NCBI GenBank assembly: GCA_965644315.1
Contig: CBFFRQ010000044.1
Location: 186,001 to 250,000, forward strand
DNA length: 64,000 nucleotides
Reading direction: 5' to 3'
Source of the DNA: Caecitellus pseudoparvulus
Taxonomy: Eukaryota > Protista > Bigyra: Bicosoecida
In this document: positions 1 to 44,401 of the stretch, piece after piece
Layout of the letters: every line of letters begins with the position of its first letter
How positions within the stretch are numbered: position 1 is the stretch's first letter
Notes under the pieces: generated by a model
What the model saw: the letters and a program-made list of their open reading frames with translations, nothing else
What the model was told of the DNA's origin: nothing
The model's database searches: none
Program-made: the position numbers and the translations under genes

Positions 1-3000
1 TACGCCTACCTGCGCTGTGGTTGGTGCTACGGCACTCGCAGGGTCCAACCCTGGCTTTGCAGCACAACTTGACGGCTTCCCTTCTCGCACCGGCGCGTTT
101 GGATCATCCATCGCAGTTTCTCATGGTGCAAGAAATGATGGAAAGGTGCTGCTTCTGATTGGAGAACAGCTGAGGGACTTTTCAGAGACGATACCAGATG
201 TTGGGGCTGTGTGGTTTCTTACGGTGACAAGCTCGCTCAACGTATCCTCCTTCTCCATTCTCGACAGCACCCAGCTTGGAAAGTTCGGGGTGAATGTTCT
301 TGCTGCTGGCCACATGCACATTGGCTCGAGTTTAGCTATTCTGCCTCATGACCGAAGTGTGCCATTCCCTGGCTTGTTTTTATACCCTCGCGTGATGGTC
401 GGGGCTGCAGGCCGGCCTGGCGACGCGGGGACCATCTTGAGCATGCGTGTGGACGACCACGCCGAAGTGGAGACAATTTCTGCTCTGAAGGCTACTTATC
501 AAAGTCCCTTTGGGATGAACTCGGGTCAAGCGCTTGCGTCTGTGGGAGATGTAGACGGCAATGGCTTTTCCGACTTCTTGTGGGGGTTCCCCGGCGATGG
601 CGGGTCTGCCGAGGACACGGGCAGCTTTGTGGGCTTCACGCTAGACATCACAAGGAACGCCTACGACTATTTCCGATTCTTGTTGGTGCCCCCGTACGAT
701 CAGATCAACTTGGATCAAGGGGATGGCTTCGGGGCCGCCCTGATTGCTTTCCCACATAGTGGTGGAGGTGTGCAGCGACTTCGCTTCGGGGTCGGTGCGC
801 CGTCGAAGGGCGCTTCTGGGCACCTATTCATCATGCAGACTGACTATGCACACGCGCCAGTGACTCAATCATCCCTGGGCATTGAGACTGTTGAGCACAT
901 AAGCCAAGGTGAGACAATGGTTCTTGGTGGGGTGATGTTCGGCAGCGAGCTCGCAGCTGGGCTTGTCGCTGGCCTGTGGAACGAAGATTCGATACCAGAC
1001 GTTGTGATGCTGCAAGCTTTGACAAAGAGCTTCGCTTTCATGTTTTCAACTGCAAATGGTGGCCTTTGCTGCTCCCGGAACGTATCGTTGGCGTCGCTGC
1101 CCTTCTTCGCCAGTGTTACGTTTGAGTTGCTGCAAGGCGCTGCCCGCCTTTGCGACCTTGATGCTGATGGAATGGATGAACTGCTATTCACCGCTAACAT
1201 CCATGGAACACTGGGTGCAGAGGGCCGCGTGTTCATGCTGAGGCTCATGCACCCTCAGGAGCTGTCCGTATCGTCCATCTCGGCAGGCACACCGCTGGAG
1301 TCCTATTTGGACTTCTTGGTTGCAGGGAGTCGCTTCGCAGTAGCACTCTCCCCCTCGTTCAGTGCGAGCGGTGTTGGTCCTCACCGAGACGTTCTCGCAT
1401 TGAGCTTGGAAGGCGATTTCTCTCCCTATGCACTGCAGGTCATTCACTTTCAGCAGAATGGTTCGCTGAACGAAACTCAAAGTTTTCACTTCATCCCTGG
1501 GATAAGCCTGCTTGACTTGGCCAGCAACCCAGTCGTCCCGACGGGCTCTTTGGCGTTACTTTTGTCTGCAACTGGCACAACCACCTTTGCAGTGGGCTGC
1601 TCCAGCAGTGCCGGGCGTGATGTGGTGGTCCTCTTGAGGATTTCAGGAGTTGTCCCGCAGCAGCCTGCCGTCTTGGTCCCTGTTGAGACGATTGAGCCCT
1701 CAGCGAGGATGTTCACGTTCTCACCGCAGATTGGCATTGATGACGAGTGGGGCTCCGCTTTGGGTTCTGGTGACGTGGACGGGGACGGCTTGCCAGAGCT
1801 GCTGATCAGTGCACCTGCCAGAAACGCAACTGGATCCGCGTGGGCGTTGTCATTCTTCTCATACTCCACAGGAGTTGTCCGTGATGTTCTGTCACTCGAA
1901 GGCTGGGCTCCCCCGATTGCATCTTCACCAGCCGCACACCTGGCCACGAAGCATAGCTGCTACGGCGCGAGTGTAGCTGTTCTTCGCAGGCCTTGGACAG
2001 CTCAGGGTTCCATTCTCATCGGGGCTCCATGTGAAACGTCTGCCGCCGCGGCAGGGGCGGTGCTTGTGCGCACAGGGGGCTCACCGCTCCCCCCGCCTCA
2101 GGCACAAGTGGTCTCCGTCGGCACACTGGCTCCAGGCCACGGCGGCATGTCTGATGATGTGGGTGGAAGTGCACGACTAGGGGCAAGTGTGGGCATCGCA
2201 CAGGGCTTTGGGACAGCGGCTGAACACGTTCTTGTTGCCTCACTGCCTGGCCAAGACCTTGGTGGCGCTTCTGGCGAGCAAGGAACGCTTGGCTTCGTCT
2301 TCCTCCTCGCGGATGGAAGCGCCGAGAGGGCCAATTTTCTGTCAGCGTCTCTGCTTCTGGCCTCTCTCCCATCTCGTGCTCTCCAGCCACTTCCAAATTC
2401 GACCATGGCCGTGGTATCTCTGGGACCACTTGAGCGCTCTGGCCCGCATGTTCTCGTGTGCGGCTTGCCACACTATGCAGACTCAAGCACGCCTTCAGAT
2501 ATAACGGGGGCACTCATGATCGTCAAGGTAGTTGGTCCAAACGCCACAGTGCAACTTCATGATTCGTTTGCAGGAGAGTCGTCATACCCTGGTCAGAGCC
2601 TCTTTCTCGGCTCAGCCCTGGCGTCTGTGGCGGATATGGATGGGGATGGAGTGCCGGACATAGCTTCAGGCGCTCCTGGCTTTGCCAGCGGGCATGGGGG
2701 TGTGTTTCTGCACTTTCTGACTTCAAATGGGTCCGTGTCTCGAGAGAACGACGTGCTCGACTGCTCTATTCCCAACGCTTGCATGCAAGGCACGCCAGCA
2801 GTCTTGGCCGGTGGATCTTCCCTCGCACACTTGGGTCCATCGCCGTACGACGTGGGGCAGCGCCTTGCAGTTGGCATGCCCGGGCGTGCCGAAGGACTGC
2901 AAGGCGTACAGAGTCGCATTGTTCTTATCGACATAGGCCCAGCCAGCACCATTCTGCACCGAATCTTCATTTCGCCTGAAAGCATCGTTGGGCCCCAGAT

Positions 3001-6000
3001 GCGACCTGGTTCAATGTTTGCAGCCGCTCTGGCTGCAGCGGGAGATGTCAACCTTGACGGTGCGCCCGACCTCGTTGTGGGGGCACCTGCTGTGTCCGAG
3101 ACTGCTCCAGAGCAGTGTGGAGCTGTCTGGATACTCACACTACCCCATCATGGAGGTATCGTGAATGGGTCACGTCTGGGCGTTGCAGAGGAAGGAGTTC
3201 TTGCACCTCGTGTGAACTGCTCAGCTGGGTTTGGCTCGTCGATCGCAGTGCTGCCGGATGTGCAAGGCACGGGGCGACTCTCCTTGGTCGTAGGCATGCC
3301 CTCATTCTCTTCACCAGGTGGAGGTCTGGATGGTCCAACTGGGGCACTTGCGCTCGTGCACACAACCCTGCCAGCGGGCCGCCCCCCTGCGCCTGTCATC
3401 ACAAGTGCCAAGTCGCCCAGCCCTTCAACAGACAGTGTCCTCAGCAGCGATGCAAACCTGCTTGCAAGCACCTACTTCGGAGCAGCAGTGGGCTGGCTGG
3501 ATGATTTGGACGGAAACGGCTGGCCTGAGGCACTGGTGGGTGCCCCGGGCTACCTAAATGGCGGGATGTTCGTGCTGTACATGGGCCCTGGTAGTTCCAT
3601 CTTGCATAAGCGTTCTGCTGTGCATGGCGAAGGCCCGCTGTACTTTGGGCAAGACGCTCAGGGTCCAGGCACCAGGTTCGGGCGGGGCCTTGCAGTTGTT
3701 CCAGACGCGAACGGGGATGGCTGGCGCGACGTAGTGGCGGGGCTCAGCGGGGCGAGATCGTCACGGGGAACAGCAGTTCTGCTGTACCTCTCCGCTCCGC
3801 ACTCTGAGCACGTGTTTTCGAATTGGACGTGCCTAGGTGATGACGCAGAGGGGCACGTATCGCCCAGCACGGTTCGTAGCTTGGGTGTGACAGTCAGCCA
3901 CGCAGGAGTGCTGGAGAATGGCTCCCCTCCCGCTCTATTGGTTGCAGCTCAATTATCTGAGAACACGACAAGCAGTGGCGTAGCGTTCATTATTCGTGTG
4001 CCTGAACTTGGCCAACCGAGAATTCTGAGCACTTTGGGCGTCGGGCTGGGTGGAATTGGGACCCCTGCCGGCTCTGACGGCAGCTCTTTTGGCTGCTGGC
4101 ACAGCGCTGCGTATGTCGGCATATCGGGACACCCTGCCGGGAAGAGCCGAGTTGCCTTGGCCTGCCAAGGGAGTAGCTCGTCTGGCTCTGCTGGGACGCA
4201 GGAGGTCCTTCTTGTTGTCGACGTGGCACGGGACGGGAGCCCCGTCGACTACGCATTTATCATGGCATCTGAAGCTGAGAACTCCGGCCCGTTTCAACCA
4301 GGCAGCTTGCTTGATGTCGGGGCGTTTCTGTCTGGCTTTGGTGATGCCAGTGGTGACGGCACATCTGACCTGCTGGTTGGATTCGCTGAGAATGGGCCCC
4401 TTGGGTTTCGCGATGGCTTCGCTGTGCTCCATCTGGGACATCGAGGGGGGCTGAAGCAAGTGCAAAGGCTTGACAGCGCTGTCGAGCCCATGCTTGTATC
4501 TCAATCCCCATCTGCCTTTGCCGGTGCAAGCGTGCTGGCGTCAAGCATGGCTGCGACGTCAGGGCCGCACGGCGTGGCTCTTATTTTTGGAGCGGGCGCA
4601 CGCAGGCGTTTCTCGCAGAGTGGCTCATATGTGGGAAGGATTACGTTTGCCCACCTGGACCTTCCTTGGCGGCCATCAGGGGACCTACCCTCCCCGATCG
4701 GGAGCACAGTTCACGCCACGAGCCAGCTCACACCGATGCCTTCGGAAGAAAGAGGAGCGTCATTTGGCAGTGCTCTTGGTCTGGCAGGTGATGTTGATGG
4801 TAATGGAGTCTTGGATGTTGTCATCGTGGGTGAGCACGCCAGCAGCTCTCCAGGAAGCTCGGGCTTGTGGTTGATGTTCTTGGATTCATCCAGCGGAGAG
4901 CAAGCTGTTGACTCGCGTTTCATCACGTCGGATGCAGGGGGCTTTGTCGGGCAGCTTGTGCTGCCAACGGGGGCATTTGCCGATTCGTCGCAAGTCATCG
5001 CCCACATGCCGAGCCTGGCAGGCGGGGACGCAGTTTCTGTGGTGGCAGTCACTGCGACCGCCCATGCGGGGCAAAGCTGCCCAGCTTGCGCAGGAACCTG
5101 GCTGCTGCATCTCAATGCTAGTGGTGCTGTCATCCACCAACATAGTCTGAACAACGCGCAAGGGGCATTCAACGGCCTGCCAGCGAATACGTACCCCACC
5201 TCAGCCCTTGCAGTTGCTGGTGACGTGGATTGTGACGGGGTTGAGGAGCTTGTCCTTACGCTTCGCAGTCATTCTCCCCTGCTTGGTGGGGCATCATCCC
5301 AAACTATTGATGGTGCAGGGGGGGCATGGGTGGTGTTCGTCGAGCCTCCAGGGGTCTTGCGGCTGGCACGCCCGCTCCACACCCATGGTGGTTTGCTGCA
5401 TCCGCACCTCCTGCCACATGGCGCATTTGGCACTGCTGTTACGAGCTTGGGGATCTTGGACCATGCCCAGGAAACGGCCGTTGTCGTATCTGATGACAGG
5501 CCTGCCTCTGGCGCCTTACCAAACTCCACGCTGCCAGTGCTGACAGTTCTCGGCCTGAGTCAGGCTGGCGGAGTCTCCTGGCTGCATGAGCTGCACAGCA
5601 CGAGCATGCCACCTGGAAGACAATGGCCTCCAGGGAGCAGGTTTGGCACATCTCTGTCCTCCGTGGGTCACTTGATCGGCGGCGGGGCGCCGACCCTGCT
5701 TGTGGGCGCGCCGCGACAGCCTGGCTGGGCTGGGGGATCAAGCAGTCCAGGAGTGGCCTGGTTACTCACCTTGACAACTGACGCATCGACGGCGGTGGAT
5801 GTGCAGCGCATCGGGCATGGTGTCTCGCGCCTGCTCATTTCCTCTGAGCCAGACGGCTTAAACTTTGGGGCTGCCCTGGCCATGGGAAGCCTCGCACCTG
5901 CTGCCAACGGCAGTGGCAACGCCACGCTCCTCGTGTCCTCCCCCACGGCCCCATCAGGGCTGCAGCAGAACTCCAGTGGAGCTGCGTACCTGTTCAGCAC

Positions 6001-9000
6001 CTCTTTGCGCCTGAATTCCACACTTGCACCGACTTGCCTGTCGCTTCCTGGCATTCGGACTGACTTCGCCGCATCACCCTTGCGGCACGACCCCCTGCAA
6101 GGATTGTCTCATGCTGATTTGGGTTTCCCACTTAGCTCTAGCTTGGGCACTTCCGTTGCTGCGCTGAATGAAAGTGACGGCGGGGGAGTGGTGGTGTTGC
6201 TAGTTGGCGCTCCAGCATTCGGCAGCGCATCTTGTGCTGGCTGTGGCGGAGTTCTCATTTTGCGGATGCAAGGATTGAACGAAGTGGGTCCCAGGCAAGT
6301 GCTGGATGCGAGCAGTATGGGCTCCTTCAGCAATTTAGCGCCAGTGGCAAGTTTTGGCAGGAGCGTCAGCATTTGGGCTGACGACTCCACAGGCACACTG
6401 TTCGCAGCGGTGGGCGCGCCCGGCTCGACTTCTGCCTCGCCTCCGTGGAGGATTTTGTTGTTCGCCGCACCTGGTGGTACATTTTCGCTGATTGATGAAG
6501 TGAACTCCACGGATTCATTGGGCCTCGGGTGGGGTCCGGGGGCACGGGGTGGCTGGTCACTTGCCTCGCTTACTGTGGGCACAAGACACGCTGTGCTTGC
6601 TGGTGCAACAGGTGCGCTGTCTACTGGCCACATCGTGGGGAGCGCAGGCCTGGTGTTCTTGGGCACGCATGGGACATTTACTGGTGCCAGGCGCATCACT
6701 GACGGACTGGGGCTGCCCGCGCATGCCCAGGCAGGTTTCGCGGTGGCCCGCTTGCCAGACTTGGACGGAAACGGCCAAGACGAAGCTGTGGTGGCTGCAC
6801 CTGGCCACCTTCCTAGTGGCAGCATCCATGTGATCTTCCTGCTCCCCTCCGGGCATATCTCGCACAGTGCGGGCGTGGACGGGCAACAAGTGGGCAATTC
6901 CGCCGAGAACTTACTTGGCAGTGCACTGCTGGGTTTGGGCCCTGGCGTAGATGGTGGGGTTAACCTGCTGGTTGGCAGCCGTGCAAACATCTCCGGGGTG
7001 GGCGCTGACTCGGCAATCTTGCTCAGCTGGAATTCCAACGGCACAGTGCGGCGCTTTGAGCGCTTGGAAGCACCGCGAGGTCGCAGGCTGCAGGCGTCAT
7101 CAACGGGGCTTGGCTCATCTTTTGCCGTGCAAGACCTGACATGGGGCACGGGAGGTGTGCCTGAGTACACTCTGGTGGGCGGAGGCTTTGGGCAGCCGAC
7201 CAGTGGCCTGCAGCGGTTCGTGCTGCGACGAGGTGCAGCGTTGCCGTCTCCGTCACGCACGACCACCCCAACAGCTTCCCCGACACCCTCGCCCACACCC
7301 TCCGCAACACGAACCCCAAGTCCACTCCCCAGTTCCCCACCTGCTGGTCCTGACCCTAGCCCCAGTCCAGCGGCCGTGGCACCAGATGTGTGCCGCGGGC
7401 TGTGGTGGGCGACTTGCGAAGAAGACGCAGGCGTGGCGGAGCAAGTCCGAGTCCAGGCACTTCCGGGGGTTTGGTGCGAGGGCTGCACTGGACCAGCCGA
7501 GTTTCTGCAGCGCTACTCTGAGCAGCCATCCTCCTTGCTCCTGTGCCCCAGGGCGGGCGCGTGCGAGGCACGGCTTGGAACCGACGCAGCGTCGCGTTGT
7601 GCTGCGGGGCACACAGGCGCTGCCTGCGCTGCCTGCCAGCAGGGCTATGCACCTTATCAGGGCTCTGACTGTGCGCCCTGTGTGCCCTGTGCAGGTGCGG
7701 GCTTGGGCATTGCTCTTCTTGCCTGTGTACCGGCCCTGCTGCTGTTGGGAGTGGGCTTCTTAACCTTCAAGGCGCTGCAAAACCGCGGTACACTCCAGCA
7801 AGACCTACTCATGGGTGCTCTGCGTGTGGCGTTGAACTACGTAGCCCTTCTAGGCTACGCTGCCATTGCGTTGCAGCCGATGACCGCTGATGGGCTGGGG
7901 CTGCACAAGCGCGCCGTGAGCTTGCCGCAATGGCAGGGAGCGTGTGGCAGGCAGGAGTCTAGCCATCGACGTGCAGTTCATCAGCTGCTGAATGGCACCG
8001 TGGGTAGCATGGCCGCCAATGCTAGCGCTTGGGTCAGCGACGCGGCACTGTGGACAGGCGACGATGACGGCTTCAGAGGGGGAGCTGCCTCCGATATTTC
8101 GGCATTTTTCTCAGGACTGGCTGCCAGCACGGGAGCATTGCCACTGTCGTCGATCGGGGGGCTTGAGTGTATACTTGGTCATAGTTCCTTTGCGCAGCAA
8201 CTGCAACTCTTTGCCTGGTTCGCGTTCGTTGCTCTCACAGCTGCTGCTGCCCTGCAGCTGGTATTTCATCTTGTGCCTGACCTGTGCTCTGGCCGCAGCG
8301 CAGGGACCAAGTCCCAGGCTCCAATGAAGGCAGTGCCAGGGCGGAGCCATGTCAAGGGATCACGAGCGTCTGACCACACGGCTCCCAAGCAAGGGTTAAC
8401 AGCAAACCCACTCCTTGCAGCTTCAAAGGCGCCGTCGACGCCAGCGAGCCCCCCAACAGCTGGGCAGGCAGGCAAGCCGGACGCAGCAACGGCCCACTCT
8501 ACAGGTGTGCAGCTTGCATGGGGCGCAGGGCGGTACATGTGGTCTCTGTACTTGCTGGTGTGGGGTGCGACTGTCGCTGCTTCCCTGCAACTGCTGTCGC
8601 CGCCCTTGCAGCTGCCGTCTGGGACTGTGTTCTCCTTGCCTTCGTCCTTGGGTGTGGACCCCTCAAAGCAGGGCCTCATACCACTGGCCCTCTTCAGCGT
8701 TATCCTGCATGCGGCAGTGTTCCCCGTCGCCTTACTTGCTCTGCTTCGCGTGCGGGGGGCTGCCTTGCTGGATGCCGGTAACCACTCCAGCGTGACGCTG
8801 TCCGTGTTCACAGACGGCTATCGCCTGCAACTGACCCCCTCCCAAGCGGAAGCCGTCACGCGGAAGGCCTTGGGAAAGGCACGGGCGTCAGCATCACAGG
8901 AGGAGCGCAAGGTGCACGCCGCGGCAGTTGCGCTGTCCGTGCACATGAGCAGGAAGCTGGCTGGTCGTTGTTTTGGCCTCGCCCGACTGGTGCCTAGCCA

Positions 9001-12378: not shown

Positions 12379-12501
12379 GCTGGTCATGGGCAAGAAGAGG
12401 GTGGAGCAGGGTTCGCTTTATGAAGGCAATCCATCGAGCTGAAACACGAAGCTTACAGCGCCAGGCACCCCGCTCTGAAAAGAACAACTGTGCATTCCAG
12501 A

Positions 12502-16497: not shown

Positions 16498-16581
16498 GGC
16501 GCCTGCAGCCGGCAGCACAATGCATTCGGCAGGTGTGCAGGCGCTCCACCCGCTTAGAGGAGCCAGGAGCCGTGCAGTGAC

Positions 16582-27532: not shown

Positions 27533-28426
27533 GCTGTGGGCATGTGCTCAGCTGCACGTGCTGCGCGCTGCCTGCACGCGCTGCCAGGCGCCGCCTCGCC
27601 AACCCGGCAGCACTGGCTTCAGGCTTGCCGGCAGCCGAAGCCTGAGCCAAGGGCGCCTTGGCAGGGGCACTTTGCAAACAAGCGCAGGAAGCGGGCGGCA
27701 CTGCCGAACTGGGTGCATCAGAGACGGGGGGAGTCATGCCTGGAGCCCACTGCGCGTTGGGGGAGCCCAGGAATGTGCCGTGCAGGCAGACCTGCTCTCG
27801 CCCTACGGAGAGGCGGCGTTTCGCCTGACTGGCCAGGATTGCGACACAATCCCCCCCACCTGCCAGAGCGCGCCTCGACACAAAAATGAAGCCAGAGTGT
27901 CAACAACATGCACAGCTCATGATCATCCGCAAGCTGGCATCATTTTTCACTCCCTGTGCCCCCCGCTGGCACTGCGACTGTGGTAGCGCAGGTGGCACTT
28001 TAGCGCAGGCTTACTCTGGCACGCCGATCCCTTGCTGCATGCGGTGGAACTTCAGGCGAACTTGCATCCAGTAACATCGAATTCGGCGAAAGTGCGTTTG
28101 TGCGCTCGGTGCACCTCCGCTGCGCGGTGAGGTGGCGGCCGACGCTCCGCCGCCGGCCGATGGCGGCACCGCAACCCTTCCACGACTCTTGCCTGTGCTC
28201 ATGGAGTTCGGCTGCCACATGTGAAGTCTGCATGTGTGCTCCATCTCTCTCATTTGCTTGCCATGGCGCGCCGTGCTGCTGCGTCGCCCTCTCGCACGGC
28301 GCTCCTGTCCCGCCCCCCGCACAGCGTTGTGCACTGCATTTCCCACACCCAGCCGCCCCCCTGGCCACCCTTCTCCGTGCCCTTGAGGAGCGGACAGGCA
28401 AGAGCACCGAGAACGAAGTCGTACAG
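27533..28426. promoter_or_regulatory. Putative bidirectional promoter region between receptor B (minus) and receptor C (plus)
   Basis: About 890 bp between two divergent start codons (27532 and 28427), with no credible gene. No specific promoter element was identified. Confidence 0.45.
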
Positions 28427-31400: not shown

Positions 31401-34400
31401 CTGCACATGCACTGTGCCCCGAGGGCTTCTGGTTTCAGCAGCTGGCGACGCCGAATGGAGCGCCTGGAGTCGGGACATGCCTGTGGCTCAGCGATTTTAC
31501 GGCGAACATCACAGGCGCCAAGGAGGTTTGCGCTGCAATGGACCCACGGGGGCTCAGCAAGCTCACGCCGTCCCCAGACACCAGAGCTGCCAACGCCTTC
31601 TTGGAAACTCTTGCAGGAGGCACTTCCGTCTGGCTGGGCCTTTTCCGAGTTGCCAAGCATGCCCCGCTGTTCTGGAGCACTGACAACCGAGAGGTGGGCG
31701 ATACGCTGGCTGACACCCGCCAACCACGGAGGTACCTGGCGCACTGGGAGGACGCTCATCCCCAGTTCACCCAAGTGGACCCGGATGTAGCGTGTGTGTT
31801 CATGAACCCATCAGGCAAGTGGGTGGAGGCCAACTGTAGTGACCTCCATTTGTTCTCTTGCCAGACCCAGCCACTGTTCGAAGTGGCGCGGGAGACCGGT
31901 CAAGTGGACCCTGCAGCACCCTCAAGTGCGAAGGACACCCAGTCCCTTCTGCACATGCACACAGCTGAAACGCCCCCAGAGATACAGAGCTTATCCTTCA
32001 GTAACATGCCGGGGTTAACTTCGTGTGCTCCAGGGTGGATCCTCAATCCGTACTCGCAGATGTGCGTGCAATTCCAGACGCAGCGCATGCACTGGCACAA
32101 TGCCAATGAGAGGTGCTCATCCTTGGGAGACCCAGGGCGGCTGTTCCGAGCAGGGTCGCCCCAGTCCTTGAAGTGGGTATCTGATCATGTGGTTGGTGAG
32201 CTTGCAGCGAGCAGCGCCTGGTGGGTCGCCATGTCGGACGCTCACCACGAAGGCAGTCCTGCGTGGCTGGACGGCACCCGCTTGTCAGTTGACTTTGTCC
32301 CCATTGCAGCCAACAGTCCAATGAGGGACTGTGGTGCTGCCTTCTCTCCAAACGTGGGAGCTGCGCCCGCCGTCGGCATGCTGCACTGTGAGGAGCCGCT
32401 TCCGTTTGTCTGCGAGGCACCGCTGGTGAGTAATGGCTCTTTTGGTTACGTAACGGTGGTGACACCCCTCAGTTGGCCTCAAGCTGCCCAAGCGTGCAAT
32501 GAGCAGTTCGGAGGCAAACTGTACGTTTCAGGGTCTGCGCTTGAGTCCAGTTTCGTGGGATCCAATGTGCTTCCTTCCATTGACGCCCCATATGCTTGGC
32601 TGGGCATGAACTTGGACTTCACTTCTGGCATGGCACACCTTGTGACTGGGGACGTGTTCGAAATGCCGGCCCAGACGTGGGAACAAGGCTACCCGACGGG
32701 CGGGGACTCCGGGCGCCCCGTGCCTGAAACCTGCATGCAGTTGAATCCGGCAACGAATGCGAACGTGCGCAACGTGCCGTGCTGCGACGCGGCACCCTTC
32801 GTCTGCCGCATTCCCTTTGACCATCAGCCTGTCTGTCCAGATTTGTGGCTGCGAGACGGGTCGGACTGTTTCTACCTGGAAACACAGCCCACCACGTACA
32901 GGCCTGCTTTCACAAGCTGTGCTGCTGAAAATGCGGCGTTGGCCACAATCAAGAGCCAGATGCAGGCAGATCGATTGTTTTCGGCCCTTTCCCTCCATCG
33001 CCTCCCCAGCGCGGTCATGACGGGACACCTTGTCCCAGAGCTGCGAAATGCGAGCACTTACTCTTTGACACAGCCCGACTGGAGCCCCTTTGATCTTGTG
33101 CCCAGCGGATCATGGGAAGGCGGACAAGAGCCAGAGCTGGCCTTTGGGTCCGCCACCTTGCTGTCAAACGTCACGCAAGGTGCGCTGACCCTGGGTGTCA
33201 CCGACACCACGGTCGCGCCATACATTTGCCAGCGCCCTGCACATGGACGCACCTTTGACCTCTGCCCTCAAGGCTGGCTTCCACTGTTTGGGCGGTGCAT
33301 CCGACACTCTCGAATGTCCAAGCGGCCCATCGGCTCACAACTGACAAAGTTGATGTCTGATAAGTTGACATGGAGGCATGCGAGAGACTTCTGCTGGGCG
33401 CAGGGCGGAACCGACCTGTTCCAGGTTGACTCCGTCTTCGTCCTTGAGCACCTTAAATTGCTGCTGGGTGCCCAAGGCTTCAAGAATTCCGACAAGATTT
33501 GGTTTGGCTTGCAGCAAGAAGGCGGCAAGCTGCGAAACTCCTTCACTGGACTCCCCGCCTGCAATGCTTCCTCTGGCGACAGCTGGTTGCTGGGTGGACT
33601 CTTTTGGCCAGGCAACGGGTCGTGCATTGACTCCATTTCACAGGGCGAGGCTGTCGCATTTTCCATTCGCGACGAATTGGCAGAAGTGCTGGACGAAGAC
33701 AAGCAGCTTGGCTGGGTATGTGAGCTGCGCCGGGATGGTACCGAAACAGGTCCGTCCAGTGGATTTTTTCGGGTTCCACACGGTTACCATGATCTCGTCG
33801 TGGGAGGCAGTGCAGTGTCAGATAAGTCTGCCGCGCAGGACTCTTGCACTGTTCTCGGAGGCGACCTGCTGTCTGTGACCAGCATTGCCGATATGGACCA
33901 GCTGCAGCCCAAGCTGAGCGCGCTCGGCGTCATCCCAACGGCGCACCTTTGGACCCAGCTTGGCATGAGTGCTGCAGACCGCCCTCGCGTGAACGCGGAT
34001 GGAAGCAGACCATCCTCATGGGTGGGGGCTCCCTCTGACGGTTCATTAGGCACGGACGACACGCTGCTGTCGAACGGAAGGTTGCAATCTCGATCTCCTG
34101 GCCAACAAGCGCTCCCTGTGTGCCAACTACCCCCTGCAGGCCTGTCACAAGTGTGTCCGCCAGGCTCGGCTGGACTCCGCCGCCGCACATGTGTGCTGCT
34201 GGCTGAGGAAACTGACCACACGCTTGTGCATCGCCAGGAAGCGGCTCAGTTGGGCGCGGACTTGCTTGCGTTCCACTCAGCGACTGACCTTGACTTTGTC
34301 GCTCACCTGTTCCCTGCTTTGGTGAATCAGTCGAACGAGAAGGCGTTTGTTGGTCTCCAGCGACGAAATGTCACTGTTCTGGATCGTGAAGGCTACGCTT

Positions 34401-37400
34401 CCACCGACGGCTCTCTCGCGTGGAACTGGATGTGGGCTCCAAGTGTGACGTGGATCGAAGTTGGCAGCGATTGCGTTCGCACGAAAGCAGAACCGGGTGG
34501 CTTCGCACTGAAGAAGCATGCTTGCAATTCTGGGGCAGAGGTCTGGGCGCTTGTAGGTCGGCCACTCGGCGCATGTCCTTCTGACTCCGTCTTTGTCGAC
34601 GGACAGTGCTTTGGCCTTCCGATTCAGTACGCTTCGAATTCTCTTGGAACGAACAAGGAAGTAGAAGGCATGTATTCTGCCTTGCGGCAGGCTTGCTGGG
34701 ACCGGGGCATGGATCTCGCGCTTTTCACGGGACCAACATTTGTGATGGGTTTTGAAGCGGGCGAGGGCGCTGATTTTCCCTTCCAAGTTGACGCGCTAAG
34801 TCATAACCCGGGTTCCGCAGCAGCTCGCTTGATCGGACTTAAGCGGACAGAGGCAGCAGATTCGTATTCGATGTGGTCTTGGACGCAGCAAGGAGTGGGC
34901 TTCGTGCCTCGAAACGGCCCGAACCCCCTCGCCTCCCCGATCCCTGTGCCGTTCTCTAGCATGAACCTCGGAACTAGCAATTCGGCGCACTGTGCACAGG
35001 TCAATGAGGATGGCGTAGTTTCGCTGGCTCAGTGCGGTAGTGATAGTTTCGGCATTTGCTCAAGCCCCCCCTGGGGTCTACTGACCACTGAAAGCACCAA
35101 CGCGTACCTTGGGCCAGGATCAGACCCGGGGTTTCTTGCAGCATTGCCAGCTGCGGAGCACTTGTCCGAACTGGGTCTGAGTGATATTCCTGCGTGTGCG
35201 CCTCGAGCAGTGTCGCCATCACCCAGCCCGCAGCCTCCAGCTTCCGCTGGTGCTATTCATGCTCCAGTCTCTATCCAGAACTTGGACAGCCCGCTGTCGC
35301 CCGTGCAGGGGGTAAGTGCGGCGTTTTCGGGGCATGGAGACCCGAGAATCAACGATGTTCTGTCGGCTGGTGACTGGGACCAGGATGGTGTTGAGGACTG
35401 GGTCGTTGTGGGCATGGACGTTGAGCCCCCCACAATCGCCATCGTATGGGGTGACCCAGGCATCACCCCGGGCTCACTCAACTTATCCAGCATCGCAGCA
35501 GGTGGCTCCACCCTGGGCTTCGCTGTGCTGGGGGGAAGCGGCGTCGGCGACTTTTTTGCTCGACAAAGCACAGTTGCCGCGGGACACGATGCCAATGGAG
35601 ATGGGCTCCCAGACATGATCATTGGTGGTGCACTGGCCAACAGCGGGACAGGGGCAGTGTTTGGTGTGTTTTCACAGGGCAAGAGGACATCTCACTCCGT
35701 TATTGTGGGCATGGCTGGCGGGCAGCAGAATTTCACTCTGGTCGGCGAAAGTGGCTGGAAACTCGGCCACAGAGTTGCCATGGGTGACATCTCAGGGGAC
35801 GGCATTGCAGAAGTTGTGGTTGGCGTGCGCGAACATGGCGGGGTTGTGCCGGGAGCATGGTCTGTGATCAGTCTTGCTGGAGGTCCCCACCTTGACGGTG
35901 CCCTGCAAGCCGCGAACATCCCCAGTTCTCTCCCCGGCACAGTTCTGCACGGGGCGGTGGGGCAAGATGCCCCGCTGTCCATGAGTGCCTCCTGTGACTT
36001 GGATGGTGACGGCACAAGCGACTTGGCGATGGGGTCACCAAAGTCTGTGAGCTCGAATGCCGAGTACGGAGGGGCTGTATTCGTGCTGTACGGTGGCTCA
36101 AGGCTGTACAATGGAAGTGATCTGGGCCCTGCTCAGTTTGACAGTCTGGCTGCCGGCTTGCATGGTGGGTTTGCCGTGTGGGGCGACGCGGAAGAAGAGC
36201 GGATTGGGGAGCCTGTGACTTGCCTTGGTGATGTTAACGCGGATGGCATGCAGGACTTGGGCATCAGTTCAGTGTGGAATGTGAACTCTGAAGCTACGAT
36301 TCTGCCGCCTCGCGTGTATGGTGTGTTTGGCGGTCCACGCATGAATGCTTCCCTGAATGCTTCGGACTTGTGGACGGGGCAAGGCGGATTCGGCATCGCG
36401 GGCCAAGACCCAGCGGGCGGATTGGGCCACTTGATCGGCGTTGGAGACTTCAACGGGGACGGCATTGATGATGTGAGCATGGCTGAGCGGTACTCATCAC
36501 CCTGTGGCAAGCGCGAAGCAGGCCGAGTGTACATCGTGTGGGGAGTGGCTGGCGCTGGCCCCACCACTCAACTGCCACTGGTCGATGTGGCTGCGGGCGT
36601 CGGGGGCTTGTCGCTGCACGGAGACACGAGTTGGGGTCTGCTGGGCAACGCCCCGGTTATTGGACTTGACGCAAATGGCGATGGGATACAAGACTTGCTC
36701 ATCGCAGCTGAGCATGGCACAGTTCGTGGCTTCCCCCTGCCGGGCGCAGCGTACGTTGTCCTTGGCCCGCCTGCTGTCGTTGCCGAGCCCGTGGTGTCGC
36801 AGTGCACCGTCGGCCTGCCGGGGCAGTCCGCGCTGGCACACGAAGACTTGGGTTCCATCTTGACCGCTGATGCCAGCGTCTCTGGTCGTTCGTACAGTTT
36901 GATCAGAGGCAACGCGAGCTCGGGTGCAGTGGGGGGTGCCTTCGCTTCCACGAGCAGTCTGAGTGGTGAACCTGGCCTGAGCCTCGTCATCAGCGCCCAG
37001 GAACCCGAATCAGCCGGAATAGTGTCCATTGTTGCTGCCCAGCTGGGCCATACTGACTGCTTCGCCTGCCTGAATGGCCCGCAAGTGCTAGGGGCGCAGG
37101 ATGGAGACGCACTTGGAACGGCACTTGGTGCTGTGGAGTCTTTCCGTGGTGCTCCGGCAGTTCTGGCGTACGCACCTGGAGCGATGAGTGGGACAGGGCT
37201 TGTGCACTTGCTCTCAGCGCACGTTTTGCCCAGCTCAGGGGACATAGCAGTTTTTAGCGTCAGCTCGGCTTGCTGGCGAGGACCCCTTTCCGGCGCTGGC
37301 TTCCGCAAGGTGCTCTCAGGAGTCTTCGGGACCGGCCTGCCGGGATCTTCCTCTGTCGTACTCACGTCTCCCGATGCAAACTCGTCGACAGGCGATCCGC

Positions 37401-40400
37401 AGGCTGGCGCGGTATGGGTGGCATTTAATGATGATAACTGGCCGACATGTTCTTCAAGCATCAACAGAATGCTTGTGGAAGATGTCAGCGTGTCCCTGGT
37501 GGGCGTGAAGTACACCGGAACAGAAGCCGGGGCCCGACTGGGCTACGATGCAGATGCTTGCGATGTGAACGGTGATGGTCTGGAGGACTTGCTTCTCAGC
37601 GCCCCCTTTGCAACTGTATCAGGGTTGCCTGAAGCTGGTTTTGTCGCTGTGCTGTTCGGGAGGGCTGACAACACATCTACCACCGATTTCCGCATCCCAG
37701 GCGATTTGGCTGACGACATCGGATACTTTGTCACCGGATCTCGTGCATTTGAAAGGTTTGGCTTCAGCATCACATGTGTCGGAGATGCTGACGGGGACGG
37801 CATCGGCGATTTCGCGGTCGGCACGAACGCCTCGACGAGCTCAGCTCCTACTTCCCGGCGCGCATTCCTCGTTAGAGGCAGCGCTGGCACCTCGAAAGCT
37901 TCGATTTCAACTGAAGATCTTGCTGCTGGCTTCAATGGGACAGCGTTCTTGCCAGAAGGCGCACAGCCAAGTGATGGTCCGCTCTACGTCGCTCCAGCTG
38001 GGCGGTGGGATAACAACACAACGACCACCGCTGTGCTTGTATCTGATCCAAGCTACATTCCTTGCAGTGGATCAGGTCGCGGCAGACTGTACGTCGTGCA
38101 TGGCAGTGACCTGGATGGCGCTGCGGTCGTCCCGCTAGCTCGGATTGCAGCGGGTGTAGGCGGATACGTAGTGAACGGCCCGCCCGGCTTGCTGCCGGAA
38201 AACGGCACCCTTGGCTCTTTCATGGGCAGCTTGGGCGATGCTGACGGCGATGGGGTCGACGATTTGTTCGTCGGGGTGCCACATGTCTGGAACTCGTCGG
38301 CTTTGCAAGGCGGCGCAGCTGTGCTGTTGCAGGGCGGGCCGCGAGTAGCTGCAGGAGATAGCGAAGGTGGCTGCTGGGTGCCCTTAGTATTGGATTGGGA
38401 GAAAGGCCCAGGCAATGACAGCGACCTGGCGATGGACGCACGGGCTATGGGAGGCCAGTTCCCAGGTCGCGGCATACGAGCCCTGGGCCATGTCGATGGA
38501 GACGCGGGCGTTGACTTGATTATCAGCGCGAACTCGGACGATATCGGTCCTGTTGGTGTGTACGTTGTGCTACAGGATGGCTTCAGCCGCATTCGAGGCT
38601 TCCAATTCTTGCAAGCGGGTATTGACGCACTCAGCATGGTGCAGTCGGGTGCAGCGTTTGGCAGGGCTGTGGGCATTGCTGGTGATGTGAACAGTGACGG
38701 TATCGCTGATGCCGCAGTGGGGGCACATAATCACGATACCCCGGGGGGTGATACGAGCACTGGCTCAGTTTTTGTGCTGCTGCTCCAGCAGGATGGAAGC
38801 ATCACGTCAGCCGCAGTACTTGATGCGCGCAGCCCTGGACTCGGGTTGCATGACAGTGACAGGTTCGGGCGTGGTGTAGCCTCCCTCGGTGACATGGATG
38901 GGAACGGTGTGCCTGACCTTCTTGTGGGGGCATTTAAAGCAGATAGGAATCATACTCAAGACTCGGGCACCAATGAAGGCGGGGCTTGGACTGTGTATCT
39001 GAACGCCACAGGTCATGCGATTGACGCGTACGAGATGACTGCTGCCAACCCACAGTGCAGCTTCTTTGGAGTTTTGCCTGTGGGTGGGTCGATCGGGTCT
39101 TCAGTAGAGAGCTTGGAGGATGTGGATGGAGACGGCTTTCGAGACGCTGCCGTGGGAGCATTCGCTCTGAACGGAGGAGATGTGTTCATCGTCTTCCTTG
39201 CAGAGAATGGAACAGACTTGGCTTTCACAAGGCTTTCTCAGATCGTCATCTCGAGCTCTCCAGTAGGGCTTGGCGACTTCGGACTTGCGCTGGCTTCAGC
39301 ACATGGCGACGTGACGGGCGACGGCATCCCAGATATGTTTGTGTCAGCCCACAATCATCAAGTGGGGGGGGCTCCCAAAGGTGGCGTGTGGCTGGTAGCT
39401 CTCGGCGAGGGTCGTGCGCTTGTCGGCACGTCAGCGGAGGTCATTTCAGAGGGGCAGGGCGGTCTCACAGAGCAGCTGCCTGGGGACGGGAGCTTTGGGA
39501 TCGGTACGGTTGCGTACATAAATCGCGGCGGCTGTCACTTGAATTTGCTAGCGCTGTCTGAAGGCACGTCAGACTTCACGCGTATGAAGACCAGCCTGTA
39601 CCCAGCCGAGCCCCACACGCCAGGGGCTGGCTGGCCTCTGACCTGTGCTGCTGCGATGGCACCCCCGCTGTCTCCTGTCGTCACCCCGTCACCAAGCCCC
39701 ACACCTGCCCCCTCCTCCACACCTAGGCCTTCACCAGTGCCCATGCAGCAGGTGGACCTTGCACTGGTGGGCAGTCTGATCCCCGGCTTGCAGGTGGCTG
39801 GGACTGAGCCGGGGGAGCGTGTGGGGGTCGGGGTCGGGATCGTTGGGGACGTGACCGGAGATGGCGTCGTGGACTTGGGCATCACGAGCGCAGGCAAGCA
39901 GGGGCCTGGCGGGGCTGGCGCGCTTATCATCGTGCCGGGGGGTTCAAACTTGGGAACTGGGCAAGTCCCTGTCCCAGCCTCAAATGGGGGTTCTCGAAGG
40001 CTCTCTGCGCGAGCTCTTACCACCAGTGTGCACCTTTCCACCATTTCTTTACTGCCTGCTGGTCGCCCAGGAACCCCGACCTTTGCAGGGGACTTCAATG
40101 GCGATGGTGTGGACGATGTGCTTGTTTCTCTGGGCGGCTCAGCAGTGGCATTGCTGCACGGCCTGACAAGCAACGCAACATTTCCAGCGAGTGTGGAGGA
40201 TATTGCCGCCTCTCCAAACGCGACTTCGCCGTTTGGGACCCTGTTTGAAGCCCCGCCGGGCCTTGCCTCGGTCGGACTGGGTGGTGGCGTGGCCGGAAAT
40301 GGACGTATTGTGGGCGAAACGCGCCACCAGATCGGCTTGGTCGGCATACGAAACGACACACAAGTGCTCGTAGCCTTCACCTTGAATGGCAAGCCAGCTG

Positions 40401-43400
40401 GTGCATCGCCTTCGTACCCCAAACAAGTGGCGCTTGTGGATGTGAATGGCACCATCGGTGGCCAGGCTGGTCTCATCGTTGATAGCTTCGGGCCCTCTTT
40501 CGACGACCCCGCTCCGATTTCAGTCAGCTGCGACTTTAACGGCGACGGGGTCGATGACACCATCCTTGGGGCACAGCATCTCTCACCTGCGGCCCGTGCG
40601 TCAGCTGGTCTCGTTTACGTCGTGCTGGGCTCTGGTGCCGACCGGCTTGGTCCGCTCACCATTCCAGAGCTGGTCCAAGATCAGGCAGTGTTGCAAGTGA
40701 ATGGTCCGGCGCCTAATGCCCGCGTGGGGTCAACTATAGTGTGCATGGGGGATTTGGACGGTGACGAGGCGGATGACATCGCGATTGGTGGCCGGGACTC
40801 GACGCATGTCTTCGTGGTGTATGGGCAAAAACAAGCCACCTTCACGGGTGCACTTGACCTGGCAGACTTCTTCCTTACGCCAGTCGGTCCCGCTGGAGCT
40901 TCCCCTGGCTACATTGTCGAAGGCAGCAGTCTGCCTGGAATGGGGAGCTTGAAGCTGCACGCCGCAGGAGACGTGAACGGCGACGCGATCCCAGACCTCC
41001 TCGTGTCGCACGATGCAGCGCCGGTGTGCAATCGAACAGAGGCGGCCTATGTTGTGGCGCTTTTCTCATGGGCTGGGCGCCGCAGCGGCATTGAGTCCCT
41101 GGATCCCGTGTTCATCTCTGGCGCCGGGGGGTGGGTAATGGGTTCCGCCGCGAACGACTCCATTTCCAGCGTGGCCGCCGCAGATATGAATGGCGACGGC
41201 GAAGTGGACTTGATCATTGGCGCACCAGGCCCCGACATAGGCGCACCGGGTCACACGTACATTGTGTTCGGACCGCCGCAGGTCGCCCACTCGCCCAGCA
41301 ACGTGTCCATGTGCGGGGGGCCACTCCCGATTCCCTTTCCTTCCGCGACGCCGACGCCGACCAGATCCCCCTCCAAGACCCCGTCCGCATCAGTCAGCCC
41401 CAGCGCCACAGGCTCAGCGTCCGTTTCTCCGTCAGGCACCAGCACGCCGTCGCAAACTCCGAGCTCCACCGGCACAGCGAGCGTCACGCCTGACCGCTCG
41501 CCCACCAGCACACCCTCTCCAACGGCATCCAACTCCCCCTCCAGCACGCCCCCTCCCACACCCAGTGTCACGCCTCGTCTCCCTGTGCTTGAAACCTCCA
41601 CCTGCCAAGATCAATGGTGGGCTGTGTGCGAGACCATCCGGGGGCCGGTGTCCATGCAAGGCGTGCGTGTCGCACCTGGCGTGTGGTGCCAGGATTGTGG
41701 GTCGTCCCACGACCTCGTCACATCTGCCGATGTGCGAGTGTGCCCTCGTTTTGGCTCGTGTCAAAGCGGAGGCCGTCTGGGCGGCGAAGTGCGCTGTGCA
41801 AAGGGACACACCGGCGCGCTGTGTGCTTCTTGCGCAGCCGGCTACACAGCCAGCAGCAGCCCTTGTGCACCCTGCGTGCCATGTGATGGGACAGGGGAAT
41901 GGGTAGTGCCTGTCGTGTCTGCCTGCGCTGCGCTGGCGCTGTGTGGGCTAGTGGTGCTGACGTACACGGCTGTAAAGGACCGTGGCAGCGTGCAGCAAGA
42001 CCTGCTCATGGGCGCACTGCGTGTGGCGCTCAACTACTTCGGCCTCATGGCGTACGTGACGGTGGCCCTGCAGCCGTACACGGAGCCGACTCTCGGGCTA
42101 TCTGAGCGAGGTGTGACGATGCAGCAGTGGTACGACGCATGTGGCCGCTCAGAGGAGTCCATCCATGCAGGGGCCGTAAACTTGACGCTGAACCCGCTGT
42201 CTGGGCCGGCAGCCTTCGGGCCGCTGCTCGACGCTGATGCGTTCCAGGCCAATTCCACAGTGTGGGTGGATGACGGCCCCCTGTACTCGCCCGAGCCCAC
42301 TCCGGATGACTCGGGGAAATTCCTCTCTCGCGTCTTCGCCGTGACGGCCACGTTGACGGGGTCACTCCCCGCTTCCTCCCTCAGCACTGTCTCCTGCGAC
42401 CTCGGCCACGCAGCGTACGCACAAGTGACCATGACCACGCTGGTTGTGGGAGTGGCTCTACTCGCTTGTGTGGCGCTGTTGGTGTCCTTTGCCGCTGGTC
42501 TGCTGTCTCCCTGCCTGCGCCTGACTGGCCTTGCTGCGTCCAACAAACCCACGACGCAGCACCTGGCCTGTTGGGGCTTGGGGCGCCTGACGTGGTCTGT
42601 GTACCTCCTGGCATGGGGCGCCGCACTGGCTGCGTCGCTGCAGGTCGCAGGCCCCAAGCTGCCGGTCGCAGGTGGCCACCACGTCATTGCAGCGTCCCTG
42701 GCTGCTGACGCAGACGAAGGGGATTTGCTGCCTTTCGCGCTGGCTTCCTTCATCCTGCACGCGTTCGTGTTCCCCCTGGCCCTGCTGCCGCTCCTGCGCT
42801 GGCAGGCGGCCAACTTGCTGGACAAGGAACACCACGCAAGCGTGACCCTTGCGGTGATGACTGCTGGGTACCGCTTGCAGCTGACAGAGTCACAGGCCAA
42901 GGCTGTGTCGAGTGCCCACGTCGACGCAGCGATGAGTGACGCAGCAGAGGCCAAGGTTGCTAAGGCTGCCGCTGTGGCCCTGGCCGTGCGTATGAGTCGG
43001 CGGCTGGAGAGTCGGTGCTTCGGCTTGGCGCGGTGTGTGCCCAGCCACGGCTTCGCATCGGTGCGGAAAGTGCAGAATGTGCTGGTGCTGTGCGCACTAT
43101 GGCTGGTGACACACCCTGTGTACAGAGCCCTGCTCGTGTGTCTGACGGTGGGAACAGTGCTGCTCCTGACGTATTCCCTGCAGCCATACACCCTGCCCGA
43201 GCTCAACTCGCTGGACATGGACGTTTCTGGTGTCGTTCTCCTGCACGTCGTGCTCAGTGCTGCCTTCCCGCCCCTCACACCCATCTCCATCATCCTCATG
43301 ATCCTGCACGCGTACGTTGTGCTTCGATTGGTGTACACGGTGCTGCGTGCCTCGTTCAAGGTGGTGCGCACCAAGGGTGCTGCATTGCAACGCAGCCTAG

Positions 43401-44401
43401 CCGCCTATCTGCCTGAGCTGCGCAGCTCAGCAGCGGCACAGAGCTCTGACGAACTGGGCGGGTCGCGCCTGCCGAGCCCCTTCCAGCTGCTGCAAGCGCT
43501 CAGTGTCCGTGCAGGCTGCATCGCGTGCAAGTCGTGCAAGCGCTCCGCTGCTCCCGACGAGGCTGTGTCTGGTGCAGACCAGTGGGGCCACGTGGGGCGT
43601 GCTGCAGTGAAGATGGTGCGTCAACGGTCACTGAGCAAACTAGGCGACGACCCACGGCAGGCGGCACGGGAGTGGAACAAAAAGCTCATGAAGTCGTTCT
43701 CTGTGCGCCACACTGCCTGTGACTCACTGGCTACCACCCTGAGCAAGTGGGCTCGGCGCAACTGCACATGCTGCCGCTGCCGTGACTCCGATGCAGCTGC
43801 CGATGCGCAGCTGGAGAAAAGTCTCCAGCGGGTGGAGGGTGACCTGGCCGTGCTGCCAAAGCAAGGCGCCATGAACCCCATGCTGCACAAGACCCTGCCA
43901 CGGACCTTGGCAGGGCAGGGGGGCAAGGATTCTGCCACCGTCCTGCAGATGTCCAGTCGGGGGTTGGTGGGCGCTGATGCGGCGCTGATGCGCGAAGACT
44001 CCGTGCACTTCGCCCCCACCATGCGCAAGTCCCGGTCCGTCTCCTCACGCGGTCTGGACGCCGGCAGTGGCGGGCGGGCCACGTTCAACCCCCAAGGAAC
44101 TGGCGGGGATTCTACAGCAGGCGCCCGCGGCGCAGTCAGTTCCAAGAACCTCCGCAGTGCTCAAACTTTGATGGCAGCGGCAGCACGGCAGACTGTGGCG
44201 TCCAAGAAGCTGGACAAGCCTGCCGCCCCGGCCCGGCCGAAGTCCACGCCGCGCAGCCAGCCTGTGCTCAACGCATCAGCAGCTGCAGCGGCGTCGGCGG
44301 CGCGATCGCCACCAGTGAACCCTCTGCGTGTGGCCGGGCGCCGTCGGTCCCTCGCCGCCCACGCACGCCAGCGCAACGCGAAAAAGGGCAAGCTTGTGTG
44401 A
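28427..44401 (+). CDS. Receptor C: ~5270-aa protein with signal peptide, ~14 C-type-lectin-like domains, 4 FG-GAP propeller blocks, S/T/P stalk, Cys-rich domain and ~9-TM module
   Basis: Exons 28427-28856, 28931-29062 and 29151-44401 (two phase-1 GT-AG introns) join the signal MALPRVHHRERARTATCLALLACAFATLAHS to the 5078-aa ORF. CTLD signatures: CPPGW..C, CAPGWILNPYSQMCVQF..WHNANERC, WLGL, WVEANCSDLHLFSCQ, CEEPLPFVCEAP. FG-GAP motifs: GDFNGDGIDD, GDMDGNGVPDLLVGA, ADMNGDGEVDLIIGAP. The C-terminal module is shared with A and B. Confidence 0.9.

Follow-up and report, generated by a model that had tools for sequence, protein, structure and literature searches.

Pkd2 of fission yeast, Trp663, and Trp1322 consist of an extracellular N-domain, nine transmembrane (TM) helices, and a disordered tail (bioRxiv 10.1101/2022.08.11.503631), and Pkd2 is a putative force-sensing channel (PMC6727746). 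Flc1-3, members of the same Pfam family PF06011 (TRP), are named as flavin carriers in the cited passages of PMC9600462, in which Flc1 is tied to calcium homeostasis. The CRMPs of alveolates (Toxoplasma CRMPA/B, Plasmodium CRMP1-4, and Tetrahymena CRMP1/2) are proposed contact sensors and carry, in this order, C-type lectin or Kringle domains, ephrin-receptor-like or EGF cysteine-rich repeats, nine TM helices, and a cytosolic tail (PMC9815656, PMC9670195); for CRMPA and CRMPB, a heterodimer held together by their TM domains has been predicted (PMC9815656). For the stramenopile Pirsonia diadema (Bigyromonada), the passages of PMC13524835 (2026) on which we draw report 445 “integrin-like” genes encoding proteins of 360-2,680 aa with FG-GAP and EGF domains, some of them with C-type lectin and several TM domains, and state that these genes are up-regulated in zoospores and that infection depends on actin. 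Finally, DGF-1 of Trypanosoma cruzi and bodonin of Bodo saltans combine a giant repeat ectodomain with a small juxtamembrane domain and 7-9 TM segments (bioRxiv 10.64898/2026.07.27.741050). Here, we compare with these proteins the products of three genes, A, B, and C, that lie within a stretch of 64,000 nucleotides of the genome of Caecitellus pseudoparvulus (the window; G000:C44:186001-250000 of an assembly of 30.6 Mb in 215 contigs).

The predicted order of parts is a signal peptide, an adhesive ectodomain of variable kind and often giant size, a Ser/Thr/Pro linker, a cysteine-rich stalk of about 95 aa, a nine-helix membrane domain, and a tail. An extracellular N-terminus and nine TM helices are also found in Pkd2, Trp663, Trp1322, and Flc1-3, and their disordered tail has its counterpart here in a long tail of low complexity that is presumably disordered. 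Unlike Pkd2 and Flc, which have about 700 aa and a small ML-like lipid-binding domain, the present family spans 1,476 to about 6,700 aa, possesses the cysteine-rich stalk together with FG-GAP or lectin arrays, and has an extra large outer loop between TM2 and TM3 as well as a cytoplasmic insert between TM5 and TM6. With the CRMPs it shares, by described architecture, adhesive domains, a cysteine-rich DUF7630/Ephrin_rec_like stalk placed directly before the nine-helix core, and a tail; however, FG-GAP arrays do not occur in the published CRMP domain lists (PMC9815656, PMC9670195), and CRMPs number a few per genome whereas this family has tens of members. The Pirsonia proteins likewise constitute an expanded stramenopile family with FG-GAP and EGF-type cysteine-rich domains, some with lectin domains and several TM segments, but the cited passages treat them as integrin-like and describe neither a multi-TM domain nor PF06011 (PMC13524835). 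Compared by description with what these passages say, they are very probably the same kind of protein as A, B, and C. DGF-1 and bodonin also belong to massively expanded families with a giant repeat ectodomain, a juxtamembrane domain, and multiple TM segments, but their ectodomain is built from β-helix “rib” modules and an Ig-like “hat” instead of FG-GAP or lectin domains on a cysteine-rich stalk, and the shape match to DGF-1_C (PF11040) in the ESM Atlas (TM-scores 0.39/0.46) is too weak for homology. FG-GAP β-propeller repeats with calcium-loop motifs are shared with metazoan integrin α; that protein, however, is a single-pass heterodimer subunit with one seven-bladed propeller and a short tail, in contrast to the many propeller units and nine TM helices encountered here. 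A canonical six-helix TRP or polycystin channel (S1-S4 plus S5-pore-S6) was considered and rejected, given the nine helices and the fact that no such chain is among the PDB matches listed; this accords with the published layout of fission-yeast Pkd2 (bioRxiv 10.1101/2022.08.11.503631). The architecture as such has been reported in outline for the CRMPs and Pirsonia, and A, B, and C represent a diverged, Pfam-invisible branch of a nine-TM superfamily that is known but poorly understood.

The open frames that share a common C-terminal module are 17-10108 (+) for A, 23102-27532 (-) for B, and 29165-44401 (+) for C, the last being the main frame of a gene that begins with two short exons. The three modules are collinear and comprise 651-714 aa. 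In BLASTP comparisons, B and C match with an E value of 2e-125 and 36% identity over 773 columns, A and C in two segments (E 2e-70 and 9e-56), and A and B with E values of 3e-51 and 2e-44. The three-way alignment (A1) has 754 columns with a mean column identity of 60% and contains the stalk motifs WWAxC, GxWCxxC, CPRxGxC, CAxGHTGAxCAxC..GY, and CAPCxPC, followed in the membrane part by RG(T/S)xxQDLxxGxLR, WxxACGR, and ILHxxxFP and then by H(A/S)SVT..GYRxQ, RCFGxxRxxPSH(G/S)F, and QPYTLxELNxLD. The common collinear module that an earlier note on this DNA had described is therefore borne out with all of its motifs and at E values from 2e-125 to 3e-51, and the paralogy of the three modules is real and far above chance. 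In a quick tree, A, B, and C fall into an unresolved polytomy with the copies on contigs C34, C38, C43, and C67 and do not form a supported exclusive clade. Third-codon-position identity among the three modules is 0.36-0.42, that is, synonymous sites are saturated. Recent tandem duplication was accordingly ruled out, both by the polytomy with copies on other contigs and by this third-position identity: the cluster is no recently formed tandem array, and its duplications are old.

One short stretch behaves differently. Of the 44 nucleotides that encode HTGAACAACQQGYAP, A (7610-7653) and B (26862-26905) share 43. Because third-position identity across the whole A and B modules is 0.36, this stretch has the appearance of a short gene-conversion tract. 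Precisely at 26864-26905, contigs from run X4 are broken or forked, which is the behaviour expected of a short repeat.

The C module was modelled with AlphaFold2 from a 27-sequence alignment (A2), module residue 1 corresponding to window position 41597, and the model reached a mean predicted local distance difference test (pLDDT) of 82.6 and a predicted template-modelling score (pTM) of 0.84. Residues 1-95 are modelled as short β-hairpins (strands at 9-95) with near-invariant cysteines and constitute the stalk. Nine long helices follow, at 98-127, 132-157, 271-309, 320-351, 377-402, 483-503, 507-528, 534-556, and 561-586, in agreement with the nine TM segments that had been proposed from the sequence. 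The loop of 110 residues between TM2 and TM3 contains the WxxACGR motif and a near-invariant cysteine pair (Cys182/Cys267), and N-x-S/T sequons are present in this loop in A, B, and C alike (A1). As the loop carries sequons and a conserved cysteine pair, it fits an outside position and a predicted nine-pass topology with the N-terminus out and the C-terminus in; the signal peptide and the cysteine-rich and sequon-bearing parts then come to lie on one side and the low-complexity tail on the other. Between TM5 and TM6, the predicted cytoplasmic helical insert carries HH(A/S)SVT..GYRxQ and RCFG..PSHGF. Residues L136, G139, W178, C182, R426, R510, P530, and D540 are invariant in all 27 members of A2, and several of the invariant positions are charged or helix-breaking residues at helix ends. 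A weak DUF7630 match in the stalk was obtained by Pfam scans for 26 of the 27 aligned members; for the stalk of C it amounts to E 6.6e-6 and 26.6 bits against a cut-off of 27, and to 30.1 bits in a six-frame search.

Four independent lines of evidence connect the membrane domain with PF06011, the gathering score of which is 28.5 bits. When a profile of 20 paralogues was aligned by hhalign with one of 10 PF06011-positive giants from this genome, Prob was 98.6% and E was 1.4e-15 over 376 columns of stalk and TM region; for the membrane part without the stalk, the values were 93.9% and 1.6e-7 over 194 columns, roughly helices 4-9, and controls with a reversed template (0.1%) or block-shuffled templates (at most 8.6%) remained low. 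In these alignments GYR is paired with (F/L)Y..Y(R), and QPYTLxELNxLD with (Q)P(F/Y)....LN.LE. The A1 profile alone matches L023, a PF06011-positive gene, both in its stalk and across TM6-9. Shape neighbours in the ESM Atlas, with TM-scores of 0.48-0.51 over about 400 residues, belong to Ephrin_rec_like, DUF7630, and PF06011 clusters; an Ephrin_rec_like plus PF06011 cluster scores 0.51/0.46, and a PF06011 cluster 0.32/0.61 (0.61 by target) for module residues 303-592; these scores are borderline, and both sides are predicted models in either case. Among language-model neighbours of the membrane part, PF06011 clusters occupy 12 of the best 30 places and a ciliate cluster the top one, and the whole module retrieves the same kinds of clusters. 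As the hhalign comparison, the match of A1 to L023, the Atlas shapes, and the language-model neighbours agree, the membrane domain is, as judged from profiles and predicted shapes, a diverged relative of the PF06011 nine-TM domain. The likeness to TRP-like or FLC-type domains to which the earlier note had pointed is backed by this profile-profile homology and by the neighbours in shape and features. In the literature, no paper was found that treats DUF7630, PF24633, or Ephrin_rec_like together with PF06011 or DGF-1.

Within the whole genome, the A1 profile detects 8 close copies over the full length and about 35 more diverged ones, spread over many contigs, the latter matching in the stalk and the last four helices. 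DUF7630 occurs at no fewer than 102 places, nearly all of them in open frames of 1,000-8,600 codons, and at least 70 loci align with a combined profile (A3) along almost all of its length, a count that is a lower bound because it rests on 77 scored candidates out of 222. The claim of a new system consisting of three clustered genes does not survive these numbers: A, B, and C belong to a gene family that ranks among the largest here and of which they make up only a small sample, and the finding extends known biology but does not represent a new kind of system. PF06011 itself scores above its cut-off in seven other giant genes but not in A, B, or C, and in several of these giants a DUF7630 match precedes it in frame by about 1 kb. 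The best PF06011 match of the genome (G000:C141:9933-11921; E 6e-12) has seven in-frame TGA codons and might represent either a pseudogene or a copy rich in introns. Another PF06011-positive, DUF7630-bearing giant, with a frame of 3,224 codons, is located at G000:C44:306026-307924, about 56 kb past the end of the window.

Outside this genome, a HMMER search of 1.84 billion representative proteins returned 33 proteins at E values below 1e-10; all that were looked up lack a name and derive from assemblies of ENA, JGI, NCBI, or Logan. Three of them are the same as genes of this or a near-identical genome (P0002 = C43, P0014 = C87, and P0020 = C18). Beyond the 33, widespread matches concern the cysteine-rich stalk only, and three remote matches in helices 6-8 (E 6e-6 to 4e-4) are two Paramecium “transmembrane proteins” and P0106, an unnamed metagenomic protein with a weak PF06011 match. 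No apicomplexan protein was obtained from this set of representatives. On the ENA metagenome contig k141_208877 (161.5 kb, L033), which stems from a related uncultured organism, a module homologue (P0003) is flanked by further FG-GAP giants with called products of 3,989 and 7,049 aa, and clustering is therefore not unique to the genome studied here.

Above the common module, the outer parts differ, and Pfam confirms what had been noted for each of them: FG-GAP in A, lectin plus FG-GAP in C, and none in B. The ectodomain of A contains FG-GAP only (E 1.9e-26 within the window, 2e-20 and 9e-42 upstream of it). In C, Lectin_C (E 1.2e-39, with four stretches that pass alone) is followed by FG-GAP (E 3.1e-60), whereas B matches no Pfam family and has no folded ectodomain. 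Of five other close paralogues, those on C34, C38, and C67 are FG-GAP giants of 4,326-4,777 codons, and those on C43 and C87 (about 2,100-2,200 codons) have Ephrin_rec_like cysteine-rich domains in place of FG-GAP. The view of a constant membrane module beneath different ectodomains thus holds for A, B, C, and these five paralogues, FG-GAP being the usual partner of the membrane module. On the cytoplasmic side, NP[LM] motifs are found three times in the tail of B against 0.17 expected from shuffles (P 0.0005) and twice in that of C against 0.04 expected (P at most 0.0005), examples being INPLRAAV, VNPLRVAG, and MNPMLH. The tail of A is without an NPL motif in the same count. NP(L/M) recurs in the TM3-TM4 loop or the tail of most paralogues (loci L003-L020) and is also present in the PF06011-positive L023. 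It is a candidate short linear motif for an adaptor.

With moderate confidence, we read A, B, and C as type-I-like, lineage-expanded multipass surface proteins related to PF06011, in which contact with or pull on the ectodomain would be transmitted through the stalk to nine-TM signalling. Binding of a ligand or a mechanical pull would act on the ectodomain, the rigid, disulfide-rich stalk would hand it on to the nine-TM domain, and this domain would signal inward, either by entry of cations (Ca2+), a role put forward for fission-yeast Pkd2 and the Flc proteins, or by way of the cytoplasmic insert and the tail with its NPL motifs. Cation entry is preferred because fungal PF06011 proteins are tied to calcium homeostasis and force sensing (PMC6727746 and the cited passages of PMC9600462). 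Contact with prey, host, or substrate might in this manner be coupled to a cell response in a bacterivorous or parasitic flagellate. Adhesion- or force-coupled signalling would be the most likely activity of the family. As for the modular receptor or channel family postulated in the earlier note, the modular architecture over a constant module stands, and the function as receptor or channel continues to be conjecture.

A number of observations weigh against this reading. The PF06011 hidden Markov model has no match in any of the 27 aligned sequences when E values up to 10 are allowed. Homology is well supported for about TM4-TM9 only, and TM1-TM3 as well as both inserts are without counterpart in the PF06011-positive paralogues; the TM2-TM3 loop and the TM5-TM6 insert probably explain why Pfam misses this subfamily. 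TM-scores of about 0.5 in the Atlas are borderline. No solved structure resembling the AlphaFold2 model was retrieved by Foldseek or VIA-align, and no pore was deduced from such a match: Foldseek against the PDB yielded noise only (best E 0.1 with TM 0.13; LeuT-type rows on top, with TM 0.10-0.14 and a root-mean-square deviation of 28 Å), and among 48,161 chains compared by VIA-align the highest Z was 8, for generic helical hairpins. Channel activity is only partly established for the PF06011 family and debated for the Flc proteins, and we know of no ligand, localisation, or phenotype for A, B, or C.

As the main rival, the proteins could be contact sensors of the CRMP type, in which the ectodomain would recognise a target cell and the nine-TM core, instead of being an ion channel, would trigger regulated exocytosis (discharge of extrusomes or secretory vesicles), possibly as a heterodimer such as ectodomain-less B with A or C. 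CRMPA and CRMPB are a predicted heterodimer with the same order of parts (PMC9815656), B and C are divergent neighbours, the only named remote matches in the TM region come from Paramecium, and a ciliate cluster is the top neighbour by features of the TM part. The likeness is architectural, however, and the search of 1.84 billion representatives produced no protein from an apicomplexan, so that we consider this reading rather unlikely. A complex prediction with the TM domains of B and C ended with a score of 0.00 and no answer, was run without controls, and is evidence neither way. A bolder version is distinctly unlikely as a whole. It would make the FG-GAP/lectin giants single-chain “adhesion-gated” nine-TM contact sensors or cation channels in a free-living or parasitic stramenopile, equivalent to the CRMP system outside the alveolates; members lacking an ectodomain, such as B, would pair via the membrane domain with giants such as A or C, and the resulting signalling unit would trigger prey capture, attachment, or secretion.

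Where the NP[LM] motifs are given more weight, in view of their enrichment in both the B and the C tail and their recurrence in the cytoplasmic parts of most paralogues, the proteins would be adhesion or phagocytic receptors with the nine-TM domain as a stable anchor and with integrin-like signalling or endocytosis through tail and loop motifs. The up-regulation of integrin-like genes in zoospores of Pirsonia and its actin-dependent infection, as described in the cited passages of PMC13524835, speak for such receptors, as does the ELMO/CED-12 gene that adjoins C. Yet the strongest conservation among the at least 70 paralogues resides within the membrane domain (QPY..ELN.LD, P530, D540, R510, and R426), and the tails, of which that of A has no NPL motif, are least conserved. 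Because the membrane domain is the most conserved part, a passive anchor is disfavoured, and this reading seems quite unlikely to us. A transporter-like membrane domain, in line with the original proposal for yeast Flc, with an ectodomain that only targets or concentrates the substrate, would accord with the naming of Flc1-3 as flavin carriers (cited passages of PMC9600462) and, weakly, with the LeuT-type rows that top the Foldseek list; as these hits amount to noise (E at least 0.1, TM 0.10-0.14, 28 Å) and giant adhesive ectodomains are atypical of transporters, it is very improbable. FG-GAP repeats with DxDxDG loops might bring to mind true integrin α subunits or adhesion G-protein-coupled receptors (GPCRs), but the predicted topology, with nine helices and not one or seven, contradicts this, Pfam scans reveal neither a 7tm nor a GAIN/GPS family nor an integrin-α tail, and GPCR or integrin chains are absent from the top rows of both PDB searches, which makes the idea barely credible. 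Signalling coupled to adhesion or force through a PF06011-related domain is the reading that we retain.

If this reading is correct, the family would bear on a domain whose mechanism is unsettled and which finds no match to a solved structure here, yet underlies the essential Pkd2 of fission yeast; if the CRMPs belong to it as well, the same domain would lie beneath contact sensors for host-cell invasion by Toxoplasma and Plasmodium. In this one genome, tens of giant adhesive ectodomains sit on the same membrane core, which serves them as a universal chassis, and the family offers a rich natural alignment, conserved motifs, and a confident model for work on structure and function. It is also a candidate set of receptors for the recognition of prey, host, or substrate in marine heterotrophic stramenopiles and would link the “integrin-like” expansions of Pirsonia with the TRP-like and CRMP world.

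The coordinates of the parts of A, B, and C are compiled in Table 1. The window has a G+C content of about 62% and very long open frames almost without introns. Gene A had been placed at 1-10108, but frame tracing shows that its true start is at G000:C44:175856, 10,144 nt upstream of the window, in a frame of 6,750 codons. Gene B is complete with 1,476 aa. For gene C, given previously as 28427-44401, the start at 28427 is correct, but three introns are present at the 5′ end, all with GT..AG borders: 28092-28324 (233 nt) in the 5′ untranslated region (UTR), and 28857-28930 (74 nt) and 29063-29150 (88 nt) within the coding region. The two short coding introns, first suggested by the sequence, both interrupt the first lectin domain; the rest of the gene, 15.2 kb, is free of introns. 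Splicing of C is documented by contigs of the seawater metatranscriptome run X2 with joints 28855>28930, 29058>29147, and 28091>28325, the first two being carried by one and the same contig. With cuts set at GT..AG, the exons are 28427-28856, 28931-29062, and 29151-44401, which were checked by hand to be in frame and encode about 5,270 aa; each exon was read on its own. The spliced contigs show that gene C is transcribed in nature. Short contigs of the marine metatranscriptome X1 lie on both B and C, the divergently transcribed neighbours, and a contig of run X3 (27332-27593) spans the start of B. For the contigs on B an RNA origin is likely, and it is not certain because DNA can occur in such libraries.

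Table 1. Parts of genes A, B, and C in window coordinates, with the evidence for each.
Feature	Position	Strand	Evidence
Gene A ectodomain, in-window part: tandem FG-GAP propeller units	1..7408	+	Pfam; continues upstream (L021:7856 onward, then L022)
Gene A Cys-rich stalk (DUF7630/ephrin-receptor-like)	7409..7699	+	Weak DUF7630 match, E 5.8e-4; A1
Gene A nine-helix membrane domain, with insertion of ~70 aa in the cytoplasmic TM3-TM4 loop	7700..9310	+	A1; BLASTP
Gene A low-complexity cytoplasmic tail and stop codon	9311..10108	+	Translation
Gene B cytoplasmic tail, ~750 aa, low-complexity, Pro/Arg/Ser-rich, three NPL motifs	23102..25344	-	Translation; motif count
Gene B nine-helix membrane domain	25345..26809	-	A1; BLASTP
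Gene B Cys-rich stalk	26810..27112	-	A1; family-wide weak DUF7630
Gene B N-terminus: hydrophobic signal-peptide-like start and Ser/Pro-rich linker of 110 aa	27113..27532	-	Translation; no Pfam family
Divergent B/C intergenic region and 5′ UTRs	27533..28426	.	X2 joint 28091>28325; X3 contig 27332-27593
Gene C exon 1: start codon, signal peptide, beginning of first C-type lectin domain	28427..28856	+	Sequence; joint 28855>28930
Gene C exon 2	28931..29062	+	Joints 28855>28930 and 29058>29147 in an X2 contig; frame by hand
Gene C exon 3, first part: array of C-type lectin domains	29151..35212	+	Pfam Lectin_C
Gene C FG-GAP (integrin-α-like) propeller blocks with 15 DxDxDG-like calcium-loop motifs	35213..41332	+	Pfam; motif count
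Gene C Ser/Thr/Pro-rich (mucin-like) linker	41333..41596	+	Translation
Gene C Cys-rich stalk (DUF7630-like), β-hairpins	41597..41893	+	DUF7630; AlphaFold2
Gene C nine-helix membrane domain	41894..43355	+	AlphaFold2; hhalign to PF06011-positive paralogues
Gene C cytoplasmic tail, two NP(L/M) motifs, stop codon	43356..44401	+	Translation; motif enrichment

ELMO/CED-12 and UFD1 are eukaryotic families that Pfam identifies in the window. The ELMO/CED-12 family gene (44489-45811, -; Pfam E 1e-17) lies tail to tail with C. In other eukaryotes, ELMO proteins function in engulfment and Rac signalling, and the adjacency to C may be due to chance. Two further long frames, 48905-56974 (-) with 2,689 aa and 46045-48822 (+) with 925 aa, match no Pfam family at E values up to 0.01 and contain neither the module nor DUF7630. 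Toward the right end of the window, a leucine-rich-repeat protein (58778-61060, -; LRR_8, E 2e-26) is followed by a protein with an Acyl_transf_3 domain (61479-63965, +).

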